From: Octopus sinensis
Lineage: Eukaryota
DNA: 64,000 nt
NCBI RefSeq assembly: GCF_006345805.1
Contig: NC_043002.1
Location: 12,710,001-12,774,000, forward strand
Direction: 5' to 3'
The first letter of the stretch is position 1. Each line of letters starts with the position of its first letter. The notes below the pieces were generated by a model. The model saw only the letters and a program-made list of their open reading frames with translations, made no database searches and was not told the origin of the DNA. Both the position numbers and the translations under genes were made by a program. Shown here one piece after another: positions 359 through 60,524 of this stretch.

Positions 359-538
359 ATTGGTTTTGACAATATGGCGGAGGAATTTCGCTACATCTTT
401 GAGTTTGGGGGTTAAAGAAAAGATTGAATTGACACGACATGAAAGGGTATGAGGTACTCTTGAAACAGGGAATATACCTGTGGCAGTCACTAGGGTCACG
501 GTTCATCCCGTCTGGGTATTGGTTACAGAGAGGATCAT
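359..538 (-). CDS. Copy A exon 2: CBM14 domain 2 (DDPLCNQYPDGMNRDPSDCHRYIPCFKSTSYPFMSCQFNLFFNPQTQRCSEIPPPYCQNQ)
   Basis: Acceptor ttttctcttcag at 539-541 and donor GTAAGT at 358; 180 nt, phase 1/1, in frame with exon 1; Cys spacing C-13-C-5-C-10-C-12-C-7-C. Translated by hand; this frame is not in the ORF track. Confidence 0.88.
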
Positions 539-1424
539 CTGAAGAGAAAATGTTTTAATAAAGTTTTAATGCAAGCGCGATAATTAATTTTGGTCATATC
601 TTGATTTTTAGAAAATGTAGTCACAAGGACCATATATTATGAAATAGTATCAAATGATACAATATATACATCAGTTCACATATATACAAATGCAGATATA
701 TATTACTTCCGGTTTTCCTAGAGGAAAGACGCGTTTGCTTTTGCTCTGTGAAGAAAACAAAAAGATTTGCATAAATCGACGAAATAATCTACTAAAACTA
801 ACAAAACGTAGAACTTGTTAACTCATAACGATCTACTAAAATACATTAATTACAATTATATTAATTAAGAACGTAATATATTTCGCTTGAAGCCAAATAT
901 AATACATTAAAGTTAGTTACGCATGCTAGATTCTTCGCCGAAAAAGCACGTGGTGGCAAGTCTTCAACTTATCTCCAACCAAATGTAAGAAGGAAAAAGA
1001 ATTGTTCTCTTTTCTGTTTTGAAAGAAAACTTCTTCGTACAAGCACGAAGGTTTGGACTGTACCTTTTACGATAAGTAACGTTTTCATATTTTTGTTTAT
1101 TATTTTTTATTTTCCTTTAATGTAAGCTAACATCTCAGTTACGATTTACGACGCCATCTTTGTTTACATTCTGAGAATAACTTTCTTTCAATTTCTGTTT
1201 CTCTTTCAATATTTCTTTCATTTTATCTCTAAAGAAATAATATTTAAAAATTCTTTTCATATGTTTATTTTCATGTAAGCTACGAATGAGCTAGAAATAT
1301 AATCGTAATTTTATCGTAATTTCATTTTATCGCAATTTCATTCTATCTCTATAAAACTAATATTTAAAAATACTTTTCATTTTTTTATTTTCCTGTAATT
1401 TAAGCTTACGACTGAGAAATATGA

Positions 1425-57700: not shown

Positions 57701-60247
57701 CTAATAATAATAATAATAATAATAATAATAATAATAATAATAATAATAATAAATGCCCTGATGCAGTACCAGGCAGTGGCTCTCATGGCTTCTGATCTTA
57801 ACTGATTGGAAGTGTTATCATGTACATTGTTTTGTCTTGGTATAAAAGATGGGCTACAGCAAATATTCTGCTCAATACCACAGATTTGCTTATCAGTTGT
57901 TTGACCTTAACCAGTTGAGCATGTTCCTTAGTGGCTGACGATATGTGCATCTCTGATCACGAGTAGAAGTAGTGGGGGAGCATTATAGCCATGTGTTGAG
58001 AGGGATTCTTTGGAGTTTGAATGATTCACCTCTGGAAACATGGGTGTTTCATTCAACATCTTTAAACAACCCTTAATCAGGGACCTTTTGAGTGGGATGG
58101 GTTACCCGACCAGAAGAAAATTCTAACTGGGCCCCATCTGCAAGGTCATGCACTGTTTATCTTGATATGAGATCACCATGTCGCGCACATATGGTTGTGA
58201 TGCATGTGCCTGGTGTACCCTTATCAGACGGGTAGTCATGATGGGTATACTGGGCTTCGTATATTTAACCCCAGTGTCACTTTGATGGCATGCACTGCTC
58301 TCTCACTCAATAATAACAATAATAATAATAATAATAATAATGGTAATAATAATAATAATTAATAAATGCGCCCTTTTAAAGCCTAGCAAGACTCATGGGC
58401 CCGGTTTCCCGGTTTCTATGGCGTATGTGTTCCCCAGCTGGACGGAACGCCAGTCCATCGCAGCGGTACTCATTTTTGCCAGCTGAGTGGACTGGAGCAC
58501 CGTGAAATGAAGTGTTTTGCTCAAGAACAGAACGCGACGCCCGGTCCAGGAATCGAAACCACAATCTTACGATCATGGTGCTGACACCCTAAACACTAAG
58601 CCAAGCGCCTCCACTAATACTACTACTACTACTACTACTACTACTACTACTACTACTACTACCAATAATAATAATAATACTAATAATAATAATAATAATA
58701 CCCAGTGTCACTTTGATGGCATGAACTGCTCTCTCACTCAATAATAATAATAATAATAATAATAATAATAATAATAATAATAATAATAATAATAATAACC
58801 CTTTCTAATCTAAGCACAAAGCCTGGAATTTTGGGGGAAGGGTCCAGTCGATAGGACTGATCCTAGTACACAACTGGTACTTACTTTCTCGACCCCGAAA
58901 GGATGAAAGGCATAGTCGACCTCGGCGGAATTTGAACTCACAAAGGTGAAATTCTACTTCACATTTTGCCCGGCGTGTTGACAGGATCTAGGATGCATCA
59001 CCCAAAATCTGACATAGAAAGACTATATATACAACGTATAGAAGGTGGTAGAGGCCTTATAGAGCTGGAAAACTACTATAAAATAACGACCATAGGACTG
59101 CAAAAATATCTACTTCAGAAGGAAGGAAAACTGATACAAATAGCGGCAAAACACGAGCAAAACAAAAAAGAATTCTCAGTATTTAAGGAAGGTGACAAAT
59201 ACAAACAAGAAATCATACCACCTAACAAATATGAAAAAGAAGAAGATGAAGAAACAACAAAAGCTATAAAACAATTGAAATCCAAACTAAAAATAGAACA
59301 GCAACGAACCATGATAAAACGATGGCAAGAAAAGCCGCTTCATGGCAAATACTGGACTAAACTAAATGCAAAAGAAATAGACAAAGAAAAGTCCCAGCAA
59401 TGGTTGAGAAGCTCAGGACTCAAAGCAGAGACAGAGGGATTTTTAATTGCAACACAAGACCAAAGCCTCTCCACCAGAAATTACCAAAAACATGTAATGA
59501 AAAGAAATATAACAAGTAACTGCAGAATGTGTGGAGATGGACAAGAAACAATAAATCATATTATCTCTGGCTGCCCAGTCCTAGCTAAGAAGGAATATAT
59601 TCACAGACACGACAGAGTTGGGACCTACATACACTGGAAGCTATGCCAGCATTATGGAATAACAACAGAAAAAAGATGGTATAGGGTCACACCAGAAAAG
59701 GTTACAGAAAACGAGAAAGCAACCATACTCTGGGATATGCCAATACACACAGATAGAGAAATTAAGGCCAACAGACCAGATATAGTTGTCAGAGATCATG
59801 AAGAAAAGATGCTTTCTAATTGTTGTGTCAATACCAGCAGATGACAACGTATCTCTAAAAGAAATGGAGAAACTTTCAAAATACAAAAACCTGGAAATAG
59901 AGGTAACCAGAATGTGGAATCTAAAAGCAGAAAGAATACCTATCATAACAGGTGCATTAGGCATGATAAAAAATATAGCAAAAACACCAAAACATATAAC
60001 ATACAGAAAATAACATACAGTATAAAATATACATATAACATACAGAAAATTGCACTACTAGGCACTGCACACATCATACGCAGAACACTTTCAATACAGT
60101 AACCATCAGAGCACCACAAATCACAGCACATACCCAAGGCACACAGAGCTGCGCTCGGTAGTGAAGTGAAAGCACGCTATAAAAATAAAATTACTGAGTA
60201 ATAATAATAATAGCAATAATGATAAATATATAGATAGAGAAACTTAC

Positions 60248-60524
60248 CGAATCTTCCTCCATAAACTGGTCGGTCGCAGTCATCATATTGGCTGCCCCGC
60301 CACACACAGACTTGTTGAGATTGAGAAAACACAGTTTGTTTAAAACATGCCAACGGTATGGGAAACATAGCATTACATAAGTAGAATTCACTGCAGTTAC
60401 TTGGGGATCGGACAAAATGTGATCCCACCCTAATTTGTGTCTGCTGACACAGAGTCATGATACTCTGACTGTAGACTGTTGACACTGCGATCAAGAGAAT
60501 GGCGGCCACAACACGGAACTCCAT
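60248..60524 (-). CDS. Copy C exon 1: signal peptide + CBM14 domain 1
   Basis: 277 nt, GTAAGT donor, six Cys. Confidence 0.9.

Follow-up and report, generated by a model that had tools for sequence, protein, structure and literature searches.

Two families of proteins have been described in the squid beak, one of them being the chitin-binding beak proteins of Dosidicus gigas (DgCBPs); the DgCBPs and chitin make up a hydrated scaffold, which at a later stage takes up coacervates of His-rich proteins and is cross-linked (bioRxiv 10.1101/2020.01.08.899344; PMC9999432; PMC11931252). According to a review, beak proteins have so far been explored in Dosidicus only (PMC11931252). The CBD-gamma domain of DgCBP-3 (PDB 7BWE/7BWO) binds chitin oligomers (bioRxiv 10.1101/2020.01.08.899344), and DgCBP-2 (UniProt A0A0G2UIZ7, AKI30063.1) was identified through combined transcriptome and proteome work (PMC9716703; PMC9999432); of DgCBP-2 and its octopus relatives, beak localisation is established for the squid protein only. 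EHEP (25 kDa, PDB 8IN3), from Aplysia kurodai, is a secreted molluscan protein made of peritrophin-A domains only, with phlorotannin or tannic acid as its ligand, and shows no chitin binding (PMC10619976). The peritrophins and obstructor/CPAP3 proteins of arthropods share the six-Cys CBM14 (peritrophin-A) module and secretion into chitinous matrices; they differ from the proteins described here in domain number and in their frequent mucin linkers, with no orthology beyond the domain. The present analysis concerns a 64,000-nt stretch of the Octopus sinensis genome (the window; CM016864.1:12,710,001-12,774,000, in which window position x corresponds to record position 12,710,000 + x) and the three genes it contains, referred to as copies A, B and C, which belong to a tandem array of 11 and are identified by sequence comparison as octopod co-orthologues of DgCBP-2.

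An exhaustive HMMER search with a profile of the octopus family collected 746 proteins at E<=1e-3, mainly long multi-CBM14 proteins; among the short matches covered over their full length in a single stretch is DgCBP-2 (E=1.3e-39, profile positions 3-131). A word-indexed profile search at E<=1e-5 returned octopod proteins only, DgCBP-2 being reached with the exhaustive search. In BLASTP, the product of copy A shares 52% identity with DgCBP-2 over residues 21-122 (E=5e-38), with a single two-residue gap; this falls well before the junction of exons 1 and 2 (residues 92/93), so that the alignment crosses the junction unbroken. If the DgCBP-2 sequence is derived from mRNA, it thus lends independent support, in a homologue, to the presence of both domains in one transcript. 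The squid protein has 158 residues compared with 152 in the octopus, the same succession of a signal-peptide-like N-terminus and two CBM_14 stretches, and the shared motifs TVFSQSQQVCV, YDDC, YGG, NDPLC and NRDPxDCxR[FY]IPCF; it differs in a second domain devoid of the SYPSM motif and in its tail. Full-length homology and a shared architecture (a predicted signal peptide and two CBM14 domains within some 150-160 residues) both place the octopus proteins in the DgCBP family. The octopus family has further members in O. bimaculoides and Argonauta hians. The orthologues of Octopus vulgaris, annotated under the derived name “binding beak 2” (CAI9724913.1 and related proteins), fall in the same 90%-identity cluster and form a comparable multi-unit tandem array on OX597819.1, where some models are chimeric across neighbouring units. 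One of these (P0001, “binding beak 2”, 188 aa; OX597819.1:121,828,640-121,873,723) is a chimera of two copies: its path takes in exon 1 and a portion of exon 2 of one copy, continues in the middle of exon 1 of another and closes with exon 3 in a different frame (...IALQDQQ).

Each of the three window genes encodes a pre-protein of 152 aa, with a mature form of about 133 aa, about 15.5 kDa, a pI of about 7.6 and 12 Cys. The N-terminus reads M-E-F-R, after which residues 5-17 make up a hydrophobic core (mean Kyte-Doolittle value of up to 3.4) that precedes V-Y-S|Q; by hydrophobicity and the -3/-1 rule, this is consistent with a predicted signal peptide of about 19 residues. Exons 1 and 2 encode one CBM14 domain each. 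Pfam CBM_14 (PF01607) matches the whole protein in two stretches (E=6.8e-13) and, when the domains of the three copies are scored singly, gives 32-33.5 bits for domain 1 and 31-33 bits for domain 2, compared with a gathering threshold of 22.1 bits. The Cys residues of domain 1 (C26-C44-C50-C60-C73-C83) are spaced by 17, 5, 9, 12 and 9 residues and those of domain 2 (C97-C111-C117-C128-C141-C149) by 13, 5, 10, 12 and 7; all 12 are invariant in 17/17 aligned family members from Octopus and Argonauta. The peritrophin consensus is roughly CX13-20CX5-6CX9-19CX10-14CX4-14C, and the spacing of both domains fits this CBM14/peritrophin-A pattern. That of EHEP reads CX15CX5CX9CX12CX5-9C (PMC10619976). 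In a sequence-profile search of the PDB, EHEP is the best match (E=1.7e-12); the chitin-binding domain of DgCBP-3 is matched at E=1.3e-4 and is a CBM14-type domain of a beak protein within a larger, multi-domain and distantly related sequence. An AlphaFold2 model of moderate confidence (mean predicted local distance difference test score, pLDDT, of 71) predicts a tachycitin-like β-sheet fold; Foldseek relates it to EHEP, the CBM14 domain of CHIT1, Der p 23 (target-normalised TM-score, TMt, 0.76; root-mean-square deviation 2.1 A), tachycitin and Avr4.

The gene model is intact in all three copies, in its exons, phases and splice sites. A tblastn search of the window with the joined protein finds exactly three exon-1 copies (E 1e-55 to 1e-60) and three exon-2 copies (E 1e-33 to 1e-39), all on the minus strand, as are all gene features given below; it reveals no other credible copy in the window and no extra CBM14 exon inside the introns. 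A TATA box, TATATAAG, lies 128 nt upstream of the ATG in 3/3 copies (60651-60644 in A, 33999-33992 in B, 9824-9817 in C), and its flanking sequence is kept in these copies and in the paralogue LOC115213541. Exon 1 comprises 277 coding nt, carries the predicted signal peptide and the first CBM14 domain and ends in a phase-1 donor, G|GTAAGT in copies A (60248..60524) and C (9420..9696) and GTAAAT in copy B (33596..33872); in copy C, the ATG at 9696 is followed by the hydrophobic N-terminus and the exon closes with ...GGAAGATTCG|GTAAGT at 9420. Intron 1 spans 16,714 nt in A (43534..60247), 16,689 nt in B (16907..33595) and 8,881 nt in C (539..9419). The acceptor of exon 2, TTTTCTCTTCAG, is identical in 3/3 copies, and the exon itself, 180 nt in phase 1-1, encodes the second domain (43354..43533 in A, 16727..16906 in B and 359..538 in C, where it opens at 538 with Cys-rich sequence).

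Exon 2 is not terminal: it ends with CAA AAC CAA T|GTAAGT, a further phase-1 donor, and is followed about 1.08 kb downstream by a mostly non-coding exon 3, the first two bases of which (AA) complete the T|AA stop codon and which then contains an AATAAA signal. The acceptor of this exon, tttcag|AA, lies at 15650 in copy B, beyond an intron 2 of 1,076 nt with SINE (short interspersed element)-like repeats inside (15651..16726), and at 42277 in copy A. With the AA of the stop, 3' untranslated region and putative 3' ends, exon 3 would extend over 15530..15650 in B (AATAAA at 15555-15550) and 42160..42277 in A (AATAAA at 42182-42177), while that of copy C lies about 806 nt outside the window, before its start. 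The same arrangement is annotated in LOC115213541 (152 aa, ending ...CQNQ), at first the closest database protein, whose coding sequence, some 0.96 kb beyond exon 2, ends two bases past a tttcag acceptor; this end (locus 13760-13761) is homologous to the start of exon 3 in copy B. A two-exon model, in which exon 2 is read through to “CK*” (QNQCK, TAA) to give 154 aa, was rejected as the main isoform because the RefSeq coding sequence ends two bases into the downstream exon and the 152-aa product is identical to that of RefSeq. The read-through form exists as an older O. bimaculoides model (P0020) and would come from retention of intron 2.

Spliced according to the three-exon model, the products of copies C, B and A match XP_036359541.1, XP_036359542.1 and XP_036359540.1 exactly, which identifies the source as Octopus sinensis and the genes as LOC118763823 (C), LOC115213536 (B) and LOC115213537 (A). 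The RefSeq coding spans agree with the window coordinates to the single base (18,249 nt for copy A, 60524..42276). RefSeq thus already holds these genes, with the same sequence, under the label “uncharacterized protein” and with no beak link stated. An initial annotation of the window, made from its sequence alone, is borne out by these results on most points: three minus-strand copies, each with a TATA promoter, a phase-1 exon 1 and a 180-nt exon 2 (in agreement with the tblastn coordinates and splice sites); introns of 8.9, 16.7 and 16.7 kb filled with retroelements, the latter recognised here by domain matches; a signal-peptide-like N-terminus followed by two CBM14/peritrophin-A domains, each of which exceeds the Pfam cut-off; a product of about 152 aa, here exactly 152; and a cephalopod origin. 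Its two exons stand, but as a description of the gene they were incomplete, the nearly non-coding third exon being absent from it. It had also called the array “hidden”, a term that has to be dropped since all three genes are RefSeq models with identical proteins.

The window holds 3 of the 11 genes of a same-strand tandem array, which lies on both sides of it, as the initial annotation had supposed when it extended the array beyond the window. Walking outward from the window with cluster members, the array was mapped from 12,669,308 to 12,879,413 (about 210 kb), with 11 exon-1/exon-2 units at a period of 15-27 kb; in the 10-kb flanks at both array ends, no more family genes were called. The ATGs of its units, all on the same strand, lie at about 12,879,413, 12,861,105, 12,843,234, 12,823,643, 12,806,960 and 12,788,085 above the window, at about 12,770,524 (A), 12,743,872 (B) and 12,719,696 (C) within it, and at about 12,693,979 and 12,679,168 below it. 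The longest units of the array are those of the window, and four consecutive upstream units encode an identical protein. In a RefSeq isoform of LOC115213517 (P0019), outside the window at CM016864.1 ~12,833,634-12,861,105, the first exon of one unit is linked to the second exon of the following unit, 27.5 kb away; both units involved own an exon 2, and this link reflects read-through, splicing between units or an artefact of annotation.

Comparison of the window with itself reveals a tandem segmental duplication of three units. Unit B (~11116-37570) and unit A (~37471-64000) are 97-98.7% identical over their full length (26.6 kb), introns and retroelements included; unit C (1 to ~11115) is 94-96% identical to A and B where alignable, with a rearranged intron 1. 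Units A and B thus differ by 1.3-3%, in line with the recently duplicated, multi-copy family of the initial annotation, compared with about 2-4% between the best-matching units of O. sinensis and O. vulgaris. As the divergence of A and B lies below that measured between the two octopus species, their duplication is probably recent, and younger on this sequence evidence than the O. sinensis/O. vulgaris split; gene conversion or an assembly artefact may also lie behind the low divergence. The A/B pair duplicated after the intron insertions. About 14.3 kb of intron 1 of copy B (18730-33035) are missing from the short-intron paralogue LOC115213541, whose intron 1 measures 2.3 kb. One-to-one orthology of units between O. 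sinensis and O. vulgaris is established for the P0017-type unit only (96-98.5% identity), the best matches of the others being ambiguous, an outcome to be expected under unequal crossing-over or gene conversion. The array would have grown by unequal crossing-over of entire 15-27 kb units, retroelement-laden introns included.

With DgCBP-2 as their closest named relative, these proteins are best read as secreted two-module chitin binders that help to order chitin fibrils in the beak or some comparable cuticle, a reading that homology makes reasonably probable; of the tissues proposed in the initial annotation, the beak was named first and is the one that this homology backs. The protein would be secreted by a cuticle-forming epithelium, the leading candidate being the beccublasts that form the beak, and its two CBM14 domains would bind chitin nanofibrils. 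The chitin-protein scaffold thus built would be hydrated, and other beak proteins would later infiltrate and cross-link it.

Several observations weigh against this assignment. The signal-peptide call draws on hydrophobicity and the -3/-1 rule only, and literature searches by O. sinensis and O. bimaculoides LOC identifiers gave no data on expression, proteome or binding for any octopus member. After IPCF, the second domain of DgCBP-2 departs from the octopus consensus. The CBM14 fold is no guarantee of chitin binding, as neither EHEP nor Der p 23 binds chitin (PMC10619976). In squid, a transcriptome study that covered stomach and intestine chose a “chitin binding beak protein” homologue for quantitative reverse-transcription PCR, as one of the target genes of the dwarf form (PMC5999225); the family name is thus no proof of beak specificity. 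Finally, the ratio of non-synonymous to synonymous differences per site (pN/pS) among array paralogues is about 1 (range 0.5-2.3, from small counts), which is compatible with relaxed constraint on some copies.

Under the beak reading, “uncharacterized” Octopus sinensis RefSeq genes are now tied to squid DgCBP-2 and, since studies of beak proteins have so far been confined to Dosidicus (PMC11931252), it offers a ready list of octopus candidates, in the form of the array, for work on beak or cuticle biomaterials. No new kind of gene or mechanism is revealed; the protein family is a known cephalopod one and the significance of the locus is modest. What remains of interest is the recent expansion of the array, a small case of gene-family growth in which units are still duplicating with their retroelement-filled introns, together with the tissue and the ligand of the proteins.

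The alternative that survives best keeps the same proteins and places them in another chitinous matrix, such as the radula, the sucker cuticle, the oesophageal or gut lining or the stylets, or divides the members among several of these tissues. CBM14 proteins are general constituents of chitinous extracellular matrices, an Argonauta “obstructor-E-like” protein stands among the family-profile matches, the squid homologue mentioned above was targeted in stomach and intestine, and 11 paralogues with amino-acid differences leave room for partitioning. Against it, the sole close homologue that has been placed experimentally, DgCBP-2, comes from the beak (PMC9999432). Such a location is therefore a real but clearly less probable option than the beak.

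Less probable still, and on the whole doubtful, is the proposal that the copies are the product of an O. sinensis-specific burst of duplication after the split from O. vulgaris, under diversifying selection, and that they are functionally distinct binders, not redundant beak scaffold genes; such binders might serve different chitinous tissues, or bind microbial chitin or, as EHEP does, catechols or polyphenols. The proposal is made because copies A, B and C have in common a derived substitution, G61F, and because pN/pS is 1 or more relative to neighbours. Codon 61 lies at 60344-60342, 33692-33690 and 9516-9514, respectively, and the substitution changes ACG... to ACF...; position 61 is Gly in DgCBP-2 and in all other aligned family members except P0005 (Pro), and G61F occurs in none of the sampled O. 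vulgaris copies. Between species, pN/pS falls to 0 (Os_17a/b vs Ov_1) and 0.32 (Os_541 vs Ov_2, a pair of ambiguous orthology). This sequence pattern fits either of two courses after duplication, relaxed constraint or diversification, with purifying selection coming later.

The same substitution pattern bears on the idea that the proteins are soluble lectins recognising microbial or prey chitin, in immunity or digestion, with paralogues diversifying under selection. The paralogue ratios of about 1-2, the even spread of variable sites over codon positions (15/14/14) and the fold matches with tachycitin and Avr4, CBM14 proteins with defence-related roles, would suit such lectins. The substitution counts are small, however, with 1-6 synonymous changes per paralogue pair, the ratio drops in the cross-species comparisons (the second of which involves the ambiguous pair), DgCBP-2, the nearest homologue with a name, is a structural protein of the beak and no immune-type domain is present in the proteins; recognition lectins are thus quite improbable.

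An equally slight chance attaches to units A and B being two haplotypes of a single unit placed in tandem by the assembler, in which case the window would hold two copies. Their near-identity over 26.6 kb and the long-read assembly of a diploid genome speak in favour of this; against it, there are no N gaps in the window, the two units differ by indels and eight non-synonymous changes in addition to their 1.3-3% divergence, and the independent O. vulgaris assembly contains the same kind of multi-unit tandem array. Finally, a non-chitin ligand such as polyphenols or catechols, with a contribution to the tanning chemistry of the beak instead of to its chitin scaffold, is hardly plausible: among solved structures, Aplysia EHEP, which has tannic acid but not chitin as a ligand (PMC10619976), is the top match in both profile and fold, but its identity is only 22-23%, its three domains surround the ligand whereas two are present here, so that no EHEP-like three-domain polyphenol site is found, and chitin binding in the DgCBP family is corroborated by a lectin assay and by nuclear magnetic resonance of DgCBP-3 (PMC9999432; bioRxiv 10.1101/2020.01.08.899344).

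The introns of the window genes hold matches to reverse transcriptase, AP-endonuclease, GIY-YIG and zf-RVT domains, in elements that are mostly antisense to the gene. Intron 1 of copies B and A contains a Penelope-like element on the plus strand (20477-23565 and 47183-50190, respectively) with an intact open reading frame of 765 aa combining RVT_1 and GIY-YIG (21268-23565 and 47893-50190); this frame is uninterrupted and of the same length in A and B, and therefore moved along with the unit duplication. Judged from its sequence, it may still be coding-competent. The same introns carry, on the plus strand, endonuclease fragments of long interspersed elements (LINEs; 45286-45966 in A, a single fragment at 18676-19356 in B) and zf-RVT matches (58966-59844 in A, 32313-33167 in B), and that of copy A also carries microsatellites. 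Intron 1 of copy C contains degraded LINE fragments (1538-4000, plus strand) and an imperfect (TAA)n microsatellite of 2.6 kb (5119-7764). In the A/B intergenic spacer, a degraded reverse-transcriptase fragment of a non-LTR (non-long terminal repeat) element lies on the minus strand at 34908..36274, with a duplicate at 61316-62789 (RVT_1 E=4.7e-20 and 3.6e-16, respectively).

AT and TAA microsatellites are numerous across introns and spacers. Long (AT)n tracts occur at 10519-10843, 24539-24874, 34319-34744, 51165-51505 and 63103-63347 and cross-match one another on both strands. Several SINE-like short repeats with the core ...TTCGTCTGCCGYTACGTTCTGAGTTCAARTTCCGCCGAGGTCGAC..., all in one orientation, lie at 15984-16451 (intron 2 of copy B) and 42611-43078 (copy A), and fragments of such repeats at 17-54, 27992-28106, 32219-32287, 54610-54724 and 58872-58940. 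ARAGORN and Rfam make no tRNA call in these repeats, and Rfam and tRNA scans of the whole window gave no matches.

Outside the window, two further features of the same chromosome were recorded. At CM016864.1 ~12,818,313-12,819,683 (minus strand), an intronless and uninterrupted open reading frame of 456 aa with a full-length Omp85-superfamily domain (E=5e-53) sits antisense within intron 1 of a neighbouring array gene; from its sequence, it resembles a gene, or a retrocopy of a gene, for a mitochondrial outer-membrane protein of the SAM50 type. Some 13 Mb away from the array (CM016864.1 ~25.73-25.76 Mb) lies a more divergent two-CBM14 subfamily, represented by LOC115213491 (156 aa, ~40-57% identity), near which an additional, inverted exon-2-like segment is present (locus positions 21939-21766).

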